Of a stretch of 64,000 nt of DNA, positions 3,001-45,070 are shown in pieces (position 1 is the stretch's first letter; the number at the start of each line of letters is the position of its first letter). Both the position numbers and the translations under genes were made by a program. The notes under the pieces were generated by a model. The model searched no databases and was not told the origin of the DNA. It was given only the letters and a program-made list of their open reading frames with translations. Source of the stretch: Phallusia mammillata (Eukaryota); the NCBI GenBank assembly GCA_965637545.1, contig OZ281497.1, forward strand, positions 14,880,001 through 14,944,000, in the 5' to 3' direction.

Positions 3001-4373
3001 CCCCGTATGAGAGTTGAGACTTTTCAAACTGACAGTGTACACATATTATGGGCTGTTCTTTAGTCAGTACAGCCGTTTTAATTTTTTTCGTTTAGGGGGG
3101 CTGTGGGTGAACCGCTGGGTCGTTTGGGGTCACACTTCAGGAGGATCAAATTTGGATTAATGACTAACATCTGAGGAAATTTGAATAAATTTAAAGCACT
3201 CTTTCTTGACCAAATGCATTTAACAAACCAGCGTTAGACATAAACGATATTTTGGGGTTTAATGGGTGAAAATGGGTAACTCTTTTTTAAGGTACGAAAT
3301 TCATTGAAATACCTTATATTGCACCAAAAAACAAAGCATATAACTCCTAAATGAAGTACTTTAGTCAGTACAGCCATTTTAAAAAATTTACGTTTTGGGT
3401 GCCTGTGGGTGAACCGCTGGGTCATTCGGGGTTAAACTTCAGGAGGATCAAATTTGGATTAATAACTAACATGTTTCTAAATTTTGTAAAAAATGAAGCA
3501 CTCTTTCTTGACCAAACGCGTATAACAAACCAGCGTTAGACAGACAGAAAAAAAAGAAAAAAGGAAAAAAAAGAAAAAAGAACAAAAATACAGACAAAAA
3601 CAATATGTGTCCCCTTCATAGAAGGTGACCTACAATAAATATATTCGCAGAAACAGGTAACGATTATAGTACTCTGAAACTTGAACTTTGGTACACATTT
3701 GCTAGCAAGCATACAACGTACCTTTACTGTTGCAAACGGTCCAGGCCTTCTATCCCATTTGCTTTCCTCTTCCACTGCTCGTGGTGAAGGTCTTCCATGG
3801 CTAGTTTGGGATCGTTTATGAGAATTCAATGAGCGGCAACCAAGACTGACTTTTCCAAAACCTGGAAGTGATGACGATGTGAACGGACGGGTTTTGTAAG
3901 TTGTGTTTCGTGTCTGCGAAAGAAACGTCTGTTGTGTTGAAATGGGCTATATTTAAACAAGCTCTTTTTAAACTAAGTAGGGTGTCCAACCGCACAATTA
4001 CAATCAAATGTACAACTTGATTCGACACAAATATCAGACCCGAACAACTTTTATATAAAACTTAATTGTATAGCCGTTATTAGCATGTAATCAATTTTGA
4101 AACACAGTGATCCTAGTTTAGAAAACCTTGGGAGGAGTGTGTGTGAGAGGTTTGTTCACGATATCCATCATAACTTCGTCTCGCGCGTCACTTGGTCCAA
4201 CATCAACTCCCGGTCGTGTGAACGCCATCTTAGTGACGGAGGTACTTGATGATGTCATTTGCGATTCGGGGCGCGGAATGTTTCGTCTTCGATTGACCTT
4301 CGTTGATTTTCCGACGTTTGTACTTGAGGTCAGAGGTCGACTTGTGGCAATACGTTTTCGTGACGGAGCTGAC
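71..4373 (-). CDS. Uncharacterised multi-exon protein-coding gene, 3' part (hydrophilic, Ser/Thr/charged-rich)
   Basis: Exons with canonical GT/AG: 4373-4127 (SAPSRKRIATSRPL...HTPPK), 3928-3722 (TFLSQTRN...PFATVK), about 2290-2142, 2064-1955 (FERQLGAPPQFGPSSQWYSF), 1864-1683 (GWMGEYGLSHWKTEFVYFLEKH), 1602-1569, about 1360-837, 638-445, 140-71 (ends TAG). Most junctions are phase-consistent. The links between 3722 and 2290 and the acceptor near 1360 are ambiguous, and I did not find the 5' end. No domain recognised. Confidence 0.65.
3058..3541. repeat. Diverged direct repeat pair (about 183-bp blocks, 301-bp period) in an intron
   Basis: 3058-3240 and 3359-3541 both start ctttagtcagtacagcc, share gtgggtgaaccgctgggtc and cttcaggaggatcaaatttggattaa, and end aacaaaccagcgttagaca, with many substitutions in between. 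Confidence 0.85.
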
Positions 4374-5763
4374 CTATGGTATGATATAAAGCAATTTGTT
4401 TAACTCTTTGGCTTGAGAAGTCATAAGATCACAATCAATTATTGAAATAGAAATTATAAACGTGCCAAGTTGTGTTTTTGAAACTTGGAGTCTCATCAGT
4501 AGACAAAAACCACAAATACAAGCTACTTTGAACGGGTTTTCGAAGTTTTCTTTGTGTCTTGTATGTCTGGAAAACTTCTGTTTCTAAATAAAAAAGGTTG
4601 TGCGGAAGCGACGAACATTTTAGCCCTTTATTCGAAAGCTTTTATCAGGCATTTTGTGATAAGAAACAGGCGTGAGTCGAAAGCGATTTTACCGTACACT
4701 GGTCAACAATTAACAATGGGTACGGGATATTCGGGGCAACTCGATAACCATAAACACATAGCACAGAAATGTAGGAGTAACATCCACAGCTAGTATAAAT
4801 GGATAATCAATGTCACCAGATCAAGCTGATTGGACGGTCACAATAACCCGGTGTTGTTGCTTGTGAAATTGTATCCAACTATGCGCTTCTGTCGCTGGCC
4901 GGGTTACTCGCTTAGAATTACGTTTTTAAGATGTCGATATTGTTGACAGCGTCACACTACACCAAACGAAATCACTGACTCTGTTGCGAGTGTAAACGCG
5001 AAATAACAGCACTGAAATGTCGCTACGTTAGTGGGATAATTTCTTCTCCACATTTCCGTGCTCCTGGCATGTCGCCCCCTTGTTTGTCTGTCGTAAATTC
5101 ATGTCCTATAGATAATTCATAAGTCGCACCTGCCTCAGCATATCCTGAAGATCTCGCTCCTCGGCGATTTTGAAAACTGTGTATGAGACAATGCAAATGT
5201 GTATTGTCAACCTTGTGTTACATAATTTACCGCACAATGCAACCTCGTTTCATAAAGCTGCGTTACAACATACAAAATGACAATTAGCGAAAGTTTGGAA
5301 TGTGGTGGAGAGGGTCGGAAGGGCATAGCTTGCCATCTTGTCATCAAAGTGGGTCCGCAGCGCGTGCGCCGCCGCAAGTTCGAGAATGCTTGTGGTAATC
5401 GCACAGCCGTGGTTCTGGTGGCTCTGCGAGTTAGTACCAGCAGCAGGACAATGGCGGCAAGCAACAAAACAAACTTTGGAGTCCCGATCAAGTACTGTCC
5501 ATTCACTGTGGGCTGGGCCGCCGAGGCGAGCGCTCACACAAAACACATCGAAGCGGATTTGTAAAAATAACACGGTCCACGGTCACCAAAGTTTCTCCCA
5601 AAATTCAATTCGTTTTGTTAGTGCCTAATATCGTAGTTAAGTATAATAAAATCCAATACTGCTATATTACGACAGGTCCTTACAAATTCTCGCAAATTTT
5701 AATGCTGCGCACAGTAAACATATCCTAACATGCTGATATAGGAGTAAAACAGAAACTAATCAC

Positions 5764-6943
5764 CTTGTTCGCTGCGTTGACAGAACAATCCTCTCACGAT
5801 CTTCGTCCAGTATCTGGTCGACGGTCTTTTGTCGTGACAGATTCGTGCGCTTGATTCCCAAGAGATTTATCTGGTCATGTATCACCGCTGACAGCGGCAT
5901 TTCTGTTGGGTCTATAACCTCATATTTGGAGTCGATGTCCCCGAGAGATCTCTGTCAAAGGCACGAGTGACGTTACTGAGCACCAATAAACACTGAGGCT
6001 ATATTAGCTCGTAAAACGACACAGAACAAACTTAAGAGTTCACAAATTAACGAGCTGGTTAAGCATGGCAACGATGCAAACACAGCAAGCAGAAAATCAA
6101 TTTGGAGGGCAATTTCCTAGTGTATTGCTAGGTTACGGAAAACGACCGGTAACTTAACTTACACTAACTAGGGTATTATTGCACACCAGTCCGCCATTAA
6201 CATTCGTTGTTTAATATTGTTGTTATTAATCACAACTGATTTAGTGCTTTTCCAGATACAATTTACAAGTGCAGTTTTTTTGTAACGCTTCTTCCTATGA
6301 GTGAACATTGTTTATCATCTATATAAGGCAGTTAAAAGTCACAAAACAGCATTCACTGTATTTCTCACTGCAGACAGAAATAGCACTTGGTACAGCTATA
6401 ATCACCCAACTGCGTTTAAAGCTTCAGATCATAATATACTTGATGCCTGACATTTTGAAGCGTTTTAACCCGCAAATGTTACCGAACGGTTAATAGATGT
6501 ACATGATTAAGTTCACTATCAGAAAACTGGTTTTATAAAACACACATAAAACCAATAAGTATTCATAATAATCCTGTTTCATTGACTTGAATCACGTAGC
6601 ATAATATTTGTTTAGCTTGGAGCGTATACTACAACTCCTGTGAGTGTGGTTACTTTGTAAGAATTGGATGTATTCATTGTTGTTGACAACCATTGAGTAC
6701 AAAATTAATCGATCTGTATCAGGCAAAGTCCGCACAATGACATGTTTCATTGAATCCATAAGAATGGTAAACATTCATAGAGCAGGCGACGTTTATTGAG
6801 TTTCTAAAATTGCCATGTATACTTACATGCTTCGACTTTTGTAGCACGAAAGAAGTGTGTGCATCCAAATATTCCAAGGCTGCGATGATTCTATCCGCCA
6901 TTGCCAATATCTTTAAGGTTCTTATCTTTAACGATATATTTTT
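5764..6943 (-). CDS. Probable coding exons of an unidentified gene (may be the 5' continuation of the 71-4373 gene or a separate gene)
   Basis: Two open exons with good splice sites: 6943-6827 (KNISLKIRTLKILAMADRIIAALEYLDAHTSFVLQKSKH, caacag/gtaagt) and 5951-5764 (RSLGDIDSKYEVIDPTEMPLSAVIHDQINLLGIKRTNL..., ttgacag/gtgatt). They are phase-compatible (0-0). I could not chain them reliably to their neighbours. Confidence 0.4.
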
Positions 6944-38324: not shown

Positions 38325-39271
38325 TTTTAGTTCAAATATAACTGTGGAACAACAATTGAATAATTAGAAGCAAAATAACACAGCGGCATTTCAAATGTAT
38401 TGGTTCGTGCAATAAACTAGTAACTAGATATCAATTAGCACAAAATTGTTTCAACTGGAATCAAGCTACGGTATTCTGAATATTATCTAAGATGACCGAA
38501 ACGCAATTTTTTTCATGGTAATTATATAATATTTGCCAAGATACCAAAAATAAAAAAAATAATTTGATAAGCGGTAAATTTTAATCAGAAAGTCATGCCA
38601 ATAAACTACTTATAATCTCGAAATAAAAGCCACACGCTCCTGGTAAATCTCATACCATCTTGCACGTTTGTCGTATCCAACATAAATGCTTGTGGCGCAC
38701 GTGTTTTTGTAATGTTGTTTTTTATCTTTTTCGTGATGAAAATTTTCGAACACTTTTTCGTCAAAAAAAATTGATTAATTATTATCAAAAGTATTTTGTT
38801 TAAGCTACATGACCTCAGCCGAGAATAAAAATGCGACTTATTCTCGCTTGTTAGGCGGCGCACCAGAGTAGGCTACGGCTAAGTTCGTTGTATTGGCAAC
38901 TGAACACACGGGTCTCCCATAAAATACGCAATCTACTAATAAAACTTATGCAAATGTTGACAGTTAAGGCTATTGGGGTCGAGGTGAAGGTTTGTAACAA
39001 AAATAACATTTTAATCCAATCTCAGACGCCCGTTTTGATATAATCACTATAGCGTACTTTCATGTTGCCCAATAGGCCTAAAATCGACGATGACAAAACT
39101 ACTCAAACGTCGAACAGACAAAGGGATGTTTAAGTAGGGATTAAATCACGAGCTTTTGGAAGCCAAAGTTTTAAAATTATTTTTTTAGTTGAAGGGTCTT
39201 TCGTTTGGAATGATGCTCGTTGGCAAAATCGTGAAGTGCCTTGTGTTTCTCAACAGGGCTTACGGCAAGAA

Positions 39272-39650
39272 TTTGCACAATGTGCGCCAAAATGTGCAGG
39301 TCGAAATGTGCGCACATTTTTCGAAAATGTGCAGGTGCCAAAATGTGCAGGGTAAAATGTGCGCACATTTTTCGAAAATGTGCAGGTGCCAAAATGTGCA
39401 GGTCAAAATGTGCAGGTGCCAAAATGTGCAGGTTAAAATATGCGCACATTTTTCGAAAATGTGCAGGTGCCAAAATGTGCAGGTCAAAATGTGCAGGTGC
39501 CAAAATGTGCAGGTCAAAATGTGCAGGTCAAAATGTGCAGGTGCCAAAATGTGCAGGTCAAAATGTGTAGGTTAAAATGTGCAGGTCAAAATGTGCAGGT
39601 CAAAATGTGCAGGTCAAAATGTGCAGGTCAAAATGTGCAGGTGCCAAAAT
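39272..39650 (+). repeat. Left TIR minisatellite array
   Basis: Units aaaatgtgcaggtc (14 bp), aaaatgtgcaggtgcc (16 bp) and aaaatgtgcgcacatttttcg (21 bp, containing an 18-bp palindrome). The 21-mers occur only in the outer half. Confidence 0.97.
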
Positions 39651-40019
39651 TTCTCCCTTTCATACTAAAAAAGTCTTTCTGTCCCTTTCACACAAACAAT
39701 TTTTTGTCCCAATTACATAATTATTATATATCTTTCCCTGCATTTTTATTTTAAATAGTGTTCTGTGCAAATCAATTAACTTATATAGGTATGTTATTTT
39801 TCTTGTTAAATGCAGTGGATTAAGTTTTTTAACTGAACAGAATATGACCCTTCAGGGCAAAAATAACTGAAAATACAATGTGGTTTCAAACAAATGCAGT
39901 GGTAAATAACTGATGCCTATATAAATGGTGAGAACTTATACTTTTGCATTGCACATCCATCATTTTTTTCATGACATCTCAGTATTATCCTTTTCTAAAC
40001 CCGTTTTGTTACCATTGTA

Positions 40020-41760
40020 CATATTTTTTACCAAAAATATAATACAGAATGCCCACAGCGGTCTCAAAAAAATATTTTCCCTATCCTAATATTCTTTCTG
40101 GCTGTTTCAGTCTCTTTATCTCTCTAATTGTTCACGCCAGGTTTAGTTTGTTTATTTATTTGCAATCCCACATGAAACATACACCTTTTTCGTTCATAAT
40201 GGCAATCATCTAGTTTCTGTATATTAGTCAGGAAACAATTACAAATTTTGCAAAAGCATCTAATGATATTTTGGTGTATTATGATATTCCTACAGTAGGT
40301 CTTTTTAGCCATCTGGTCCACACAATAGCAAGTCAGAAGCAATAACATGAATGTTTTAGCAAACTTAAAATTAGGGCATCACATCAAGTATTTGTGTGGG
40401 TTTCAAAATTAACCTAATTAAATACCCATATACCAAGTTATGTCATGTAAATGAGCCTCAAAGAAATAAAAAATGTCAAACATTAAGTTGGGCAACTGTG
40501 TGGTTGTCCTTTTCTTTTTGAATGTTGTCATTTGAGTTTCTTCCAAAGACACATATATAGTCCTTTTGTGCAGTATAACCCAAAGGATGGAAAACTTTCT
40601 AATAATTCATTTGTTTCATTGAATAAAAATCACTGGACAGCTGGGTCTTTGACTTGGTTTTGAGTTTAATAACAGTATACTCATATGGTAGTCCAGCAAC
40701 TTCTAGAATTTCACATATGTCTTTTTTGGAAACTCTGTGAGGATCAGTGTAACTTTTGCAATGCAGTAAAAATCTAGCTTGTTGGCTGGCCGTAAACATC
40801 CTGTCAGGCATTTACGCACTTTGTAAAAGTTGCAGTAACTCATAAAAGGATAAGCGAGACCTCCAGACTTTGGCTCCACTAAAGAAATCAGCTGGCCCTG
40901 TGGTCGCATGGTTGACAACATGCTGACAATTTTGATAACTTCCGTAAACTAGTTTTTTGCCTTGAAAAAACATATCCTCATAAATACTCTGTTGTGTCTA
41001 ACTCTTTGTTACTTATCATAGCAATTTGACTTGTGTTTTCTGCACCAGTTTCCTTGGTGGTTATGATGTCTAGCAATTGTTTTGGTGCCTTGAATTTTTC
41101 TTCAAATAAACTTAATTTTTGATTCACAAAATTTACCCTTTGTTGACAGTTTAAAATGAGTAACTTTGGAAAAAAACATGATCTTTGTTCAAGCTTGACC
41201 TTTCGTCTGTCCAGAGTTCCTGGTCGAGGCCAAAGTCGTTGAACATCAGTTCAAAGATACAGCCAGTTAGGAAAGTTCTATTTTTACCAGACTTTAAATC
41301 AATTAGTAATAAACTTTATGCACCCTTTAATATGTTAGGTAAAATCACTTCAAAGCGTTTAAAGAAGTACTAAAAAGATAAAACGTACATTAAATACTCT
41401 CCAACAGCACAATCACAACCACGTAGTAACATTATACAGGGTAGATGCATAAATCTGACCATACAAGCCCAGCTTTGTCATTTGCTTGCTCTTAAAGCAC
41501 CAAACTCAATGCAAGCATCCGACAAGCGTGTAGTGTTAATCAAGCGTGACGGAAACAATAGCTGGACTGTCATATGAGTATACTATTGTCTAATTGTAAA
41601 ATCTATAGAAGCTGGGCAGGCTACAAGCTAACAGGCCTTAAATTAAAAACAATAAAGTCAAACCGATTGAGGTGACGATCGTGTACATATCTAGTCTGAA
41701 AAACAGTGTTTCCTATTTCCTGAATGCTAGATAATTTCACGCTTTGCCATATCTAACAAA
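40020..41760 (-). pseudogene. Decayed coding-like remnant inside the foldback core (second copy at +2552)
   Basis: Long near-open stretches on the minus strand broken by isolated stops and frameshifts, e.g. LIDLKSGKNRTFLTGCIFELMFNDFGLDQELWTDER, LLILNCQQRVNFVNQKLSLFEEKFK, IYEDMFFQGKKLVYGSYQ...SFYELLQLLQSA*MPDRMF...EVAGLPYEY, and RCFCKICNCFLTNIQKLDDCHYERKRCMFH. No family identified. Confidence 0.4.
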
Positions 41761-41895
41761 CACAACATGCATTTTTACAAGTTTCTCTTAAATCCGATTT
41801 TAATTTATAGGTCATAACTTATAACTAATATTTTTGGCACAATTTATGACCACAACAATAGTTTGACGTTAAATATCAATACTTCATTTGAGCGA

Positions 41896-42202
41896 CTGCA
41901 CATTTTGGCACCTGCACATTATGACTTGCACATTTCGGCACCTGCACATTTTGACNNNNNNNNNNNNNNNNNNNNNNNNNNNNNNNNNNNNNNNNNNNNN
42001 NNNNNNNNNNNNNNNNNNNNNNNNNNNNNNNNNNNNNNNNNNNNNNNNNNNNNNNNNNNNNNNNNNNNNNNNNNNNNNNNNNNNNNNNNNNNNNNNNNNN
42101 NNNNNNNNNNNNNNNNNNNNNNNNNNNNNNNNNNNNNNNNNNNNNNNNNNNNNNNAATGTGCAGGTCAAAATGTGCAGGTCAAAATGTGCAGGTGCCAAA
42201 AT
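41896..42202. repeat. Central arrays (inner end of a right TIR, 200-N gap at 41956-42155, inner end of a left TIR)
   Basis: 41896-41955 matches the start of the right array (44448 onward). 42156-42202 matches the end of the left array. Confidence 0.9.
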
Positions 42203-44447
42203 TTCTCCCTTTCATACTAAAAAAGTCTTTCTGTCCCTTTCACACAAACAATTTTTTGTCCCAATTACATAATTATTATATATCTTTCCCTGCATTTTTA
42301 TTTTAAATAGTGTTCTGTGCAAATCAATTAACTTATATAGGTATGTTATTTTTCTTGTTAAATGCAGTGGATTAAGTTTTTTAACTGAACAGAATATGAC
42401 CCTTCAGGGCAAAAATAACTGAAAATACAATGTGGTTTCAAACAAATGCAGTGGTAAATAACTGATGCCTATATAAATGGTGAGAACTTATACTTTTGCA
42501 TTGCACATCCATCATTTTTTTCATGACATCTCAGTATTATCCTTTTCTAAACCCGTTTTGTTACCATTGTACATATTTTTTACCAAAAATATAATACAGA
42601 ATGCCCACAGCGGTCTCAAAAAAATATTTTCCCTATCCTAATATTCTTTCTGGCTGTTTCAGTCTCTTTATCTCTCTAATTGTTCACGCCAGGTTTAGTT
42701 TGTTTATTTATTTGCAATCCCACATGAAACATACACCTTTTTCGTTCATAATGGCAATCATCTAGTTTCTGTATATTAGTCAGGAAACAATTACAAATTT
42801 TGCAAAAGCATCTAATGATATTTTGGTGTATTATGATATTCCTACAGTAGGTCTTTTTAGCCATCTGGTCCACACAATAGCAAGTCAGAAGCAATAACAT
42901 GAATGTTTTAGCAAACTTAAAATTAGGGCATCACATCAAGTATTTGTGTGGGTTTCAAAATTAACCTAATTAAATACCCATATACCAAGTTATGTCATGT
43001 AAATGAGCCTCAAAGAAATAAAAAATGTCAAACATTAAGTTGGGCAACTGTGTGGTTGTCCTTTTCTTTTTGAATGTTGTCATTTGAGTTTCTTCCAAAG
43101 ACACATATATAGTCCTTTTGTGCAGTATAACCCAAAGGATGGAAAACTTTCTAATAATTCATTTGTTTCATTGAATAAAAATCACTGGACAGCTGGGTCT
43201 TTGACTTGGTTTTGAGTTTAATAACAGTATACTCATATGGTAGTCCAGCAACTTCTAGAATTTCACATATGTCTTTTTTGGAAACTCTGTGAGGATCAGT
43301 GTAACTTTTGCAATGCAGTAAAAATCTAGCTTGTTGGCTGGCCGTAAACATCCTGTCAGGCATTTACGCACTTTGTAAAAGTTGCAGTAACTCATAAAAG
43401 GATAAGCGAGACCTCCAGACTTTGGCTCCACTAAAGAAATCAGCTGGCCCTGTGGTCGCATGGTTGACAACATGCTGACAATTTTGATAACTTCCGTAAA
43501 CTAGTTTTTTGCCTTGAAAAAACATATCCTCATAAATACTCTGTTGTGTCTAACTCTTTGTTACTTATCATAGCAATTTGACTTGTGTTTTCTGCACCAG
43601 TTTCCTTGGTGGTTATGATGTCTAGCAATTGTTTTGGTGCCTTGAATTTTTCTTCAAATAAACTTAATTTTTGATTCACAAAATTTACCCTTTGTTGACA
43701 GTTTAAAATGAGTAACTTTGGAAAAAAACATGATCTTTGTTCAAGCTTGACCTTTCGTCTGTCCAGAGTTCCTGGTCGAGGCCAAAGTCGTTGAACATCA
43801 GTTCAAAGATACAGCCAGTTAGGAAAGTTCTATTTTTACCAGACTTTAAATCAATTAGTAATAAACTTTATGCACCCTTTAATATGTTAGGTAAAATCAC
43901 TTCAAAGCGTTTAAAGAAGTACTAAAAAGATAAAACGTACATTAAATACTCTCCAACAGCACAATCACAACCACGTAGTAACATTATACAGGGTAGATGC
44001 ATAAATCTGACCATACAAGCCCAGCTTTGTCATTTGCTTGCTCTTAAAGCACCAAACTCAATGCAAGCATCCGACAAGCGTGTAGTGTTAATCAAGCGTG
44101 ACGGAAACAATAGCTGGACTGTCATATGAGTATACTATTGTCTAATTGTAAAATCTATAGAAGCTGGGCAGGCTACAAGCTAACAGGCCTTAAATTAAAA
44201 ACAATAAAGTCAAACCGATTGAGGTGACGATCGTGTACATATCTAGTCTGAAAAACAGTGTTTCCTATTTCCTGAATGCTAGATAATTTCACGCTTTGCC
44301 ATATCTAACAAACACAACATGCATTTTTACAAGTTTCTCTTAAATCCGATTTTAATTTATAGGTCATAACTTATAACTAATATTTTTGGCACAATTTATG
44401 ACCACAACAATAGTTTGACGTTAAATATCAATACTTCATTTGAGCGA
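42203..44447. repeat. Second copy of the foldback core (39651-41895), apparently identical
   Basis: All ORFs recur at a constant offset of 2552 with identical translations, and spot checks found no differences. Confidence 0.95.
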
Positions 44448-44719
44448 CTGCACATTTTGGCACCTGCACATTATGACTTGCACATTTCGGCACCTGCACA
44501 TTTTGACCTGCACATTTTGGCACCTGCACATTTTGACCTGCACATTTTGGCACCTGCACATTTTCAAAAAAATGTGCGCACATTTTGACCTGCACATTTT
44601 GGCACCTGCACATTTTCAAAAAATGTGCGCACATTTTGACCTGCACATTTTGGCACCTGCACATTTTCGAAAAATGTGCGCACATTTCGACCTGCACATT
44701 TTCGAGCACATTGTGCAAA
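44448..44719 (-). repeat. Right TIR minisatellite array (inverted)
   Basis: Reverse-complement units gacctgcacatttt, ggcacctgcacatttt and aaaaatgtgcgcacatttt. Shorter than the left array (about 272 vs about 379 bp). Confidence 0.97.
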
Positions 44720-45070
44720 AAACGCTCGCATGCCCGCCTCGTGTTTCTGGCCTTCGCAAAATGGAACATCACAGAAAACGTTCAATAGGTTGTGGATTTT
44801 ATTGCTCAATTAAACACAAGTAGAAAGTTTCGTAACATGCAATACAAAGCGCACCAATTCTCACACAAAAACATATAATTTATGTCTCCCAATTCCGGCA
44901 GTTTGTAATTAATATAACTCGGCCTTTGACTTAAAAGCAACAAAATCAAGTTTTTCGTCACTGTGATCGATTAAAACTTTTGCTTTAAGATTAAGAAATT
45001 TAAACTATTTAAACCAACTCTAATAATTCATCATTTTGGGTCGCAAAAAAACTAAACAAAAACAACTAAG

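Follow-up and report, generated by a model that had tools for sequence, protein, structure and literature searches.

Structure of the Locus

The DNA analysed here (the window) is a stretch of 64,000 nucleotides from the ascidian Phallusia mammillata, comprising positions 14,880,001 to 14,944,000 of contig OZ281497.1 in the assembly GCA_965637545.1, and between its positions 39251 and 44740 it carries a transposable element bounded by two inverted arrays of short tandem repeats. What is found there is probably a single non-autonomous insertion of ca. 2.94 kb of the cut-and-paste type, drawn twice in the assembly and likely moved by sister elements of the Zisupton lineage. At each end it has an imperfect terminal inverted repeat (TIR) of ca. 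37 bp, followed inwards by a subterminal array of 14/16-bp units, the two arrays being inverted relative to each other; a non-coding core of 2.25 kb lies in between, and an 8-bp duplication of a GC-rich target flanks the whole.

The octamer gtgtttct occurs in the window only twice, at 39243–39250 and 44741–44748, in each case 21 nucleotides (nt) outside an array, and the two copies pair as the left and right target site duplication (TSD). The left terminus (39251–39288, plus strand) is a unique 38-nt end starting with CAACAGGGCTTACGG and forms an imperfect inverted repeat of the right terminus (44704–44740, minus strand), a unique 37-nt end finishing with CGCATGCCCGCCTC. In an in-register alignment, 8 of the first 15 positions of the outer ends agree, and 22 of all 38; positions 22–35 form an unbroken 14-nt block of identity, TTTGCACAATGTGC. 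Imperfect TIRs of ca. 37 bp are thus present together with the inverted arrays. The latter were delimited with Tandem Repeats Finder and an inverted-repeat scan at 39272–39650 (379 bp) and 44448–44719 (272 bp), or, counted from the inner borders of the unique termini, at 39289–39650 on the plus strand and 44448–44703 on the minus strand. Both consist of 14-bp and 16-bp units (AAAATGTGCAGGTC / AAAATGTGCAGGTGCC) running in opposite orientations, and the left one further shows a higher-order unit of 51 bp, in which the palindrome AAAATGTGCGCACATTTT lies. The 9-mer AAAATGTGC is present 25 times in the window and its complement 18 times, all within 39289–44702. A preliminary description of this locus, which had reported a pair of inverted arrays (ca. 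379 and 272 bp) sharing one 9-bp core, a direct repeat 21 nt beyond each of them, and 21-nt termini complementary at 8 of 15 positions, is borne out in all these respects.

The span 39251–44740 contains two copies of the core, at 39651–41895 and 42203–44447 (both plus strand), 100% identical to each other, the second being most likely the same DNA assembled twice. They are separated by the first 60 bp of the right array (41896–41955, plus strand), which run up to a contig end, an unfilled gap of 200 N (41956–42155), and the last 47 bp of the left array (42156–42202, plus strand), which begin at a contig start and are identical to 39604–39650. The AT-rich core of 2.25 kb reported earlier is real as to size and composition (2,245 bp, 33.5% G+C), but it is displayed twice around a gap, and the extent of 5.5 kb given to the element is most likely an assembly doubling of one of 2.94 kb. 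The core is non-coding: it has no stop-free frame above 90 amino acids (aa), the ten frames examined match no Pfam family, and the sequence has no Rfam match. A 40-nt inverted repeat lies inside it (40658–40697 and 41561–41600, 78% complementary, 863 nt apart).

A Single Element Probably Assembled Twice

The segments 39604–41955 and 42156–44507, 2,352 bases at an offset of 2,552, are identical without a single mismatch, and for this reason the two sides of the gap are considered to overlap rather than to abut. When the overlap is collapsed, the element measures 5,490 − 2,552 = 2,938 bp, which is within 4 bp of the range of six gap-free full-length copies (2,942–2,976 bp). Two unplaced contigs, C195 (L001) and C265 (L006), match both flanks of the window element at 99–100% (the left from 37.9 kb, the right to 46.1 kb), and each contains one core with gtgtttct on both sides. 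As far as the sequences allow a judgement, the 5.5-kb span is thus very probably a single element assembled twice: two contigs, both ending inside the element and overlapping by 2,352 bp, would have been joined by a 200-N spacer without being merged.

It is unlikely that both cores are real, in the form of a head-to-tail dimer or of a copy inserted into the array of another, which would make the element ca. 5.5 kb long or longer. The gap conceals the junction between the cores, inverted arrays can favour rearrangement, and a copy devoid of a TSD (L017, see below) hints at recombination between elements. However, a dimer is contradicted by the perfect identity across the gap, by the outer TSD, which fits one insertion, and by the two contigs with a single core at the same site. 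Moreover, in each of the five examined loci with two cores, the partial copies are separated by 200 N, and in the four other than the window (C1:22.19 Mb, C4:15.80 Mb, C1:16.84 Mb, and C7:0.69 Mb), where the gaps are of equal size, at least one of these copies stops within the core in the manner of a contig end. No gap-free dimer was found among the 20 copies retrieved with 1.5-kb flanks.

A single element drawn twice is not peculiar to the window. At least five chromosomal gaps of 200 N lie inside falsely doubled copies (at the four places just listed and at 41956–42155 of the window), and approximately 18–20 of the 312 contigs are small unplaced pieces carrying a copy of the family (C49, C54, C174, C176, C186, C187, C195, C209, C220, C235, C242, C243, C249, C256, C260, C265, C279, and C286). 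Because so many gaps and unplaced contigs involve its copies, the family is regarded as a systematic cause of assembly breakage in this genome, and gene or repeat counts made from the assembly are inflated at the doubled places.

Copy Number, Ends and Target Sites

The genome searched comprises 240 Mb with eight large scaffolds, and the copies that were read are selected loci rather than the whole family. The left 38-mer was found 73 times with up to 3 mismatches and the right 37-nt end at least 71 times, while reversed control patterns gave no match; insertions are present on all eight large scaffolds, and the core is matched at 98–100% identity in at least 44 places. Fifteen cores from different loci show a mean pairwise divergence of 0.16%, each differing from the consensus by 0–3 substitutions, which indicates a very recent burst. 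All copies start with CAACAGGGCTTACGG and end with CGCATGCCCGTCTC, and the boundary with the flanking DNA is constant. A perfect 8-bp TSD, different at each place and situated exactly at the constant ends, was found at 19 of 21 independent loci, including both coding copies described below. L015 (C4:22761719–22764606) has a TSD of 7 bp, or of 8 bp if the last base of the element was lost, and L017 (C4:2297024–2299986) has none (1 of 8 bases matches), which suggests an exchange between two copies or a rearrangement of the flank. The targets are GC-rich and weakly symmetric; of the 19 sites, 12 have C at −1, 11 have C at +1, and 14 have G at +10.

The window copy differs from most others in having a 7-bp deletion in the core and, as the fourth-last base of its right terminus, C in place of T (GCCTC instead of GTCTC). 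This end variant is present at no fewer than five other loci, and since L004 has both the variant end and the 7-bp deletion, the variant seen in the window has itself transposed.

These data uphold the claim that a genuine transposon family is present, with other copies sharing the termini and the 8-bp TSDs. The possibility that the copies are a dispersed segmental repeat, or a satellite-bounded duplicate spread via recombination, has next to nothing left to recommend it in the face of 19 different TSDs, each perfect and directly abutting the constant ends, with insertions on every one of the eight large scaffolds; at a single site, 8 bp would match by chance in 1 of 65,536 cases. Pieces of the family can nevertheless also spread passively, as a solo right-end fragment is amplified in a tandem unit of ca. 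5 kb on C5.

The amplified piece (L030 and L031, C5:6614764–6682844) is ca. 60–110 bp long, lacks a left end, and occurs eight times on one strand, mostly at distances of 5–10 kb; it appears to have been carried along in a tandemly duplicated unit. Two copies of 4,458 bp with identical variant ends lie in the same orientation 34.5 kb apart on C2 (17971110–17975567 and 18005654–18010111), and are probably a segmental duplication that includes the element.

Array Variation and Derivative Copies

The length of the arrays varies across copies from 100 to 397 bp on the left and from 77 to 266 bp on the right. It differs even between contigs representing one locus, namely between the window and C195/C265, and between C243 (L018) and C209 (L019); for instance, the window has arrays of 379 and 272 bp versus 232 and 77 bp in a contig of the same insertion site. 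Such differences reflect either allelic or somatic instability or a collapse in the assembly.

A 46-nt stretch of the array has 222 matches in the genome, and all 100 that were listed fall within intervals bounded by the ends of the family. In these listed matches the arrays are therefore not free satellites unlinked to the core, an outcome considered possible at the outset.

The family has also given derivatives resembling miniature inverted-repeat transposable elements (MITEs), 108–122 bp in size and consisting of the left end, two or three array units, and the right end. One of them, L021 (C1:15172357–15172466), is 110 bp long and has an 8-bp TSD of its own, CAACTTTT; others are located at C2:20470922–20471043 and C6:12110608–12110715. 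Older copies, ca. 90% identical and 3.4–7.4 kb in size, contain unrelated insertions. Three of these (L022, L023, and L024, 5.3–7.4 kb) were considered as autonomous members and rejected as old, ca. 90% identical copies with nested foreign insertions, non-coding for the family. The element nested in L022 (C5:16345700–16353200, positions 3516–6591 of the locus) has a gene with THAP and DDE_Tnp_4 domains, of the Harbinger/ISL2EU type, adjoining a YqaJ-exonuclease gene with a SWIM-like motif (Pfam E values 3e-39, 5e-13, and 7e-12).

Coding Elements Sharing the Ends

A search with 20 nt of the left end retrieved a variant diverging after the first 16 nt, and a search with the right end retrieved the matching variant ends. 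When paired, these ends delimit two elements that are 97% identical, L028 on C4 (3.018–3.024 Mb; 6,518 bp, TSD CAAATCAA) and L029 on C6 (8.045–8.051 Mb; 6,793 bp, TSD CCGATCGG). A third coding copy lies on contig C249, and two distant paralogues (ca. 40% identical) on C2 and C3. L028 and L029 share with the short family the 16-nt left end, the right end, and the array units, while their interior shows no similarity to the 2.2-kb core beyond ca. 170 bp adjoining the right array; the core, in turn, has no protein-level similarity to the transposase family of the larger elements. The preliminary description had called for a full-length copy with a transposase, and coding elements of 6.5–6.8 kb do exist, but both of the sequenced ones bear candidate lesions (see below).

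The gene of these partner elements is divided into at least 15 exon-like segments, which were searched one by one rather than as a joined, spliced model. The order of domains is C2H2 fingers, a SWIM-like cluster, a CxC4 cluster, an RNase-H-like DDE core, an Ulp1/C48 protease, and a PHD finger. Judging from the shared ends, it is most likely that the short elements are moved in trans by the protein of the 6.5–6.8-kb elements.

The Partner Protein and Its Relation to Zisupton

A 161-aa exon compared with 1.84 billion representative proteins has 29 relatives, of which the five named ones belong to Ciona intestinalis (four) and Styela clava (one). The longest is isoform X1 of Ciona LOC104265342 (P0031, 1,283 aa), and L028 together with L029 is collinear with its residues 22–1265. 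LOC104265342 contains CxC4 (49.5 bits with a cut-off of 26.9), Peptidase_C48 (Ulp1), and a PHD finger, and CxC4 (PF18717) is found above the cut-off in all full-length homologues. This cysteine cluster is tied by Pfam to the KDZ transposases.

Word-indexed and then profile searches with the central part of LOC104265342 returned only tunicates (Ciona, Styela, and Clavelina) and many teleosts. The teleost relatives are multicopy, are often named "HMG domain-containing protein 3-like", and share the order CxC4, SAP, C48, PHD. In one of them, P0067, the region similar to the Ciona core (E 4e-66) is followed by C48, an F-box, and CxC7, the combination described for the Zisupton of platyfish, so that the link with Zisupton leads via P0067 and not via the platyfish protein itself. 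The definition of CxC7 as a family was based on Zisupton from platyfish, and an F-box is present in one isoform of that protein (PMC12062965). Zisupton elements are multi-exonic and code for proteins of up to 1,400 aa (PMC9297572), their TSD is 8 bp long (PMC12730594), and among vertebrates they are present in teleosts only (PMC4350176).

The fold was predicted with AlphaFold for a 729-aa Ciona paralogue, P0003, from 31 sequences, with a predicted local distance difference test (pLDDT) value of 79. Foldseek found no match for this model in the PDB. In an exhaustive structural search with VIA, residues 337–711 of the model aligned to DDE transposases and integrases with Z of 5–9.3; the top matches were ISCth4 (Z 9.3 over 211 residues) and the avian sarcoma virus (ASV) and foamy-virus integrases (Z ca. 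8), followed by TnsB, Tn5, MuA, IstA, piggyBac, Hermes, and the P element, with DDE enzymes filling nearly the whole top of the list. Three acidic residues are invariant in 21–31 sequences, namely D356, which lies in a strand, D559, which directly follows one, and E650, which lies in a helix, and the corresponding motifs GDGNWK, ITDIA, and AEQSN are kept in L028. Taken together, the DDE fold predicted by the model, the invariant triad, the CxC4 cluster, and the relatives confined to tunicates and teleosts point to the partner gene coding for a DDE-type transposase of the Zisupton lineage.

Several observations weigh against a Zisupton-driven family. The KDZ model of Pfam, PF18758, has no match at the partner locus, nor in the Ciona, Styela, Clavelina, and fish homologues, with E up to 10; the comparison of the partner with platyfish Zisupton is indirect, going through the fish homologues; and structural Z scores of 7–9 are middling for VIA. 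A stop at 1175–1177 of L028 is absent from L029, and near 3070–3137, where L028 is continuous, the frame of L029 is interrupted by a stop and shifted; both sequenced partner copies thus carry candidate lesions, one or more in each, and may not be intact sources of transposase. Mobilization in trans is argued from the shared ends and from nothing else. Finally, an empty gtgtttct site, whose existence had been suggested as a check, has no match in the assembly. An Atlas feature search, on the other side, returned KDZ clusters at 0.77–0.83, which is to be taken as a lead only.

Kinship with Other Superfamilies

The preliminary description proposed a foldback-like element that could be akin to Galileo of the P superfamily, to hAT, or to Phantom of the Mutator group, and that matched no named element. 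No named counterpart of this family was found, in agreement with that description, and the likeness to foldback elements holds as regards the inverted arrays of copy-dependent length. The arms formed by these arrays are, however, subterminal, and account for only ca. one fifth of the length. The proposed kinship with P, hAT, or Mutator is not supported, since no coding elements were found with these ends other than those with a gene of the Zisupton/KDZ lineage.

If the element did belong to the P (Galileo-like), hAT, or Mutator (Phantom-like) superfamily and was moved by a transposase of that kind, the 6.5-kb elements would be carriers of a captured gene, which we regard as very improbable. 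A TSD of 8 bp is compatible with P and hAT elements as well, the GC-rich, weakly palindromic target is P-like, the genome has frames of P-type transposases of up to 744 aa, and the best structural match of the partner core, a transposase of the IS256 family, is bacterial kin of Mutator, so that a distant relationship is conceivable. However, a P, hAT, or MULE domain is absent from all elements retrieved with these ends (CAACAGGGC...GCCCGTCTC). In Pfam scans, the partner exons and homologues contain no hAT transposase domains (BED finger, hAT dimerisation), and no MULE domain is found in the partner exons or in LOC104265342. The TSD of 8 bp likewise differs from the lengths usual in Mutator (9–10 bp) and in the foldback elements Galileo (7 bp) and FB (9 bp). 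Capture of a host gene is also at odds with the KDZ-associated CxC4, the invariant DDE triad, and the multicopy relatives in teleosts and tunicates, all of which are typical of a transposase.

Proposed Mobilization and Comparison with Known Systems

In the mechanism proposed for the Zisupton-lineage pair, the zinc-finger modules of the transposase would bind the 14/16-bp units of the arrays, which we infer to be its putative binding sites, and the number of units would drift via slippage or unequal exchange. The two ends would then be paired, and the element excised and inserted with an 8-bp stagger at GC-rich, weakly palindromic sites. For their movement, the short elements would depend on the protein made by the 6.5-kb elements, and transposition is presumed to be still ongoing. 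The system is best classified within the Zisupton superfamily, already known, as a new ascidian family of non-autonomous elements plus the autonomous partner, and not as a new kind of element. That it constitutes a currently active chordate Zisupton system, formed by an autonomous/non-autonomous pair whose ends are expandable arrays of a 14/16-bp putative binding unit, is a tentative proposal, plausible but on balance doubtful.

The Zisupton superfamily was reportedly described by Bohne and colleagues in 2012, and the KDZ group by Iyer and colleagues in 2014. The pair found in P. mammillata resembles Zisupton in the 8-bp TSDs, the terminal inverted repeats, and the recent bursts of activity, and the partner does so in its large multi-exon transposase with KDZ-associated cysteine clusters and an Ulp1-type protease module, as well as in having many relatives in teleosts but none in other vertebrates. 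There are also differences. The Pfam model of KDZ misses this tunicate/teleost branch, the window element is devoid of a gene and has a 2.2-kb core unrelated to the coding element, and the ends contain length-variable arrays of 100–400 bp composed of 14/16-bp units; no such arrays were found described in the Zisupton literature covered here (the original description aside).

With the foldback elements of Drosophila, FB and Galileo, the family shares unequal inverted arms of short tandem units, variable in length, and a destabilising effect on assembly. Unlike in those elements, the 2.2-kb middle lacks a palindromic structure, unique sequence instead of repeats forms the extreme ends, and the associated transposase is not of P type. 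The closest described proteins, Ciona LOC104265342 and its uncharacterised paralogues from Styela and Clavelina, are collinear with the partner gene, at 33–82% identity per exon, and have the same order of CxC4, C48, and PHD, but in contrast to the partner gene they are annotated as ordinary genes.

Transposases of the Zisupton/KDZ type are among the least studied cut-and-paste enzymes; in the literature covered, again with the original Zisupton description aside, no structure, binding site, or in vitro reaction was found for them. As the ends, the likely binding unit, the target, and a young family of ca. 70 copies are laid out here, the mechanism is open to experimental testing. Should the proposal be true and one of the three coding copies prove intact, it would be the first Zisupton-type transposase directly testable for binding, excision, and 8-bp integration, and ascidians could gain a transgenesis tool of their own. 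Clean and young to an unusual degree, the system accounts for a class of assembly errors in this genome.

Other Transposase Genes in the Genome

A P-type transposase was considered as the driver of the family and rejected: the model PF21787 (P-element/THAP9-type) has matches at 52 places in the genome, among them C3:17509267, C3:17562131, C3:12656428, and C85:11235, none of which is linked to these ends. Some of the frames are 666–744 aa long, and on this basis the genome has apparently intact P-like genes. The KDZ model of Pfam, tried for the partner, matches 18 other places of the genome but not the partner element. Among the separate PF18758 loci, those at C6:12803120–12804337, C3:31860265–31861166, C4:29056850–29057751, and C3:17635711–17636708 contain internal stops, and places on C3 and C4 have identical scores, as duplicates would. 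With these separate PF18758 loci, the genome harbours a second KDZ lineage, and a more canonical one.

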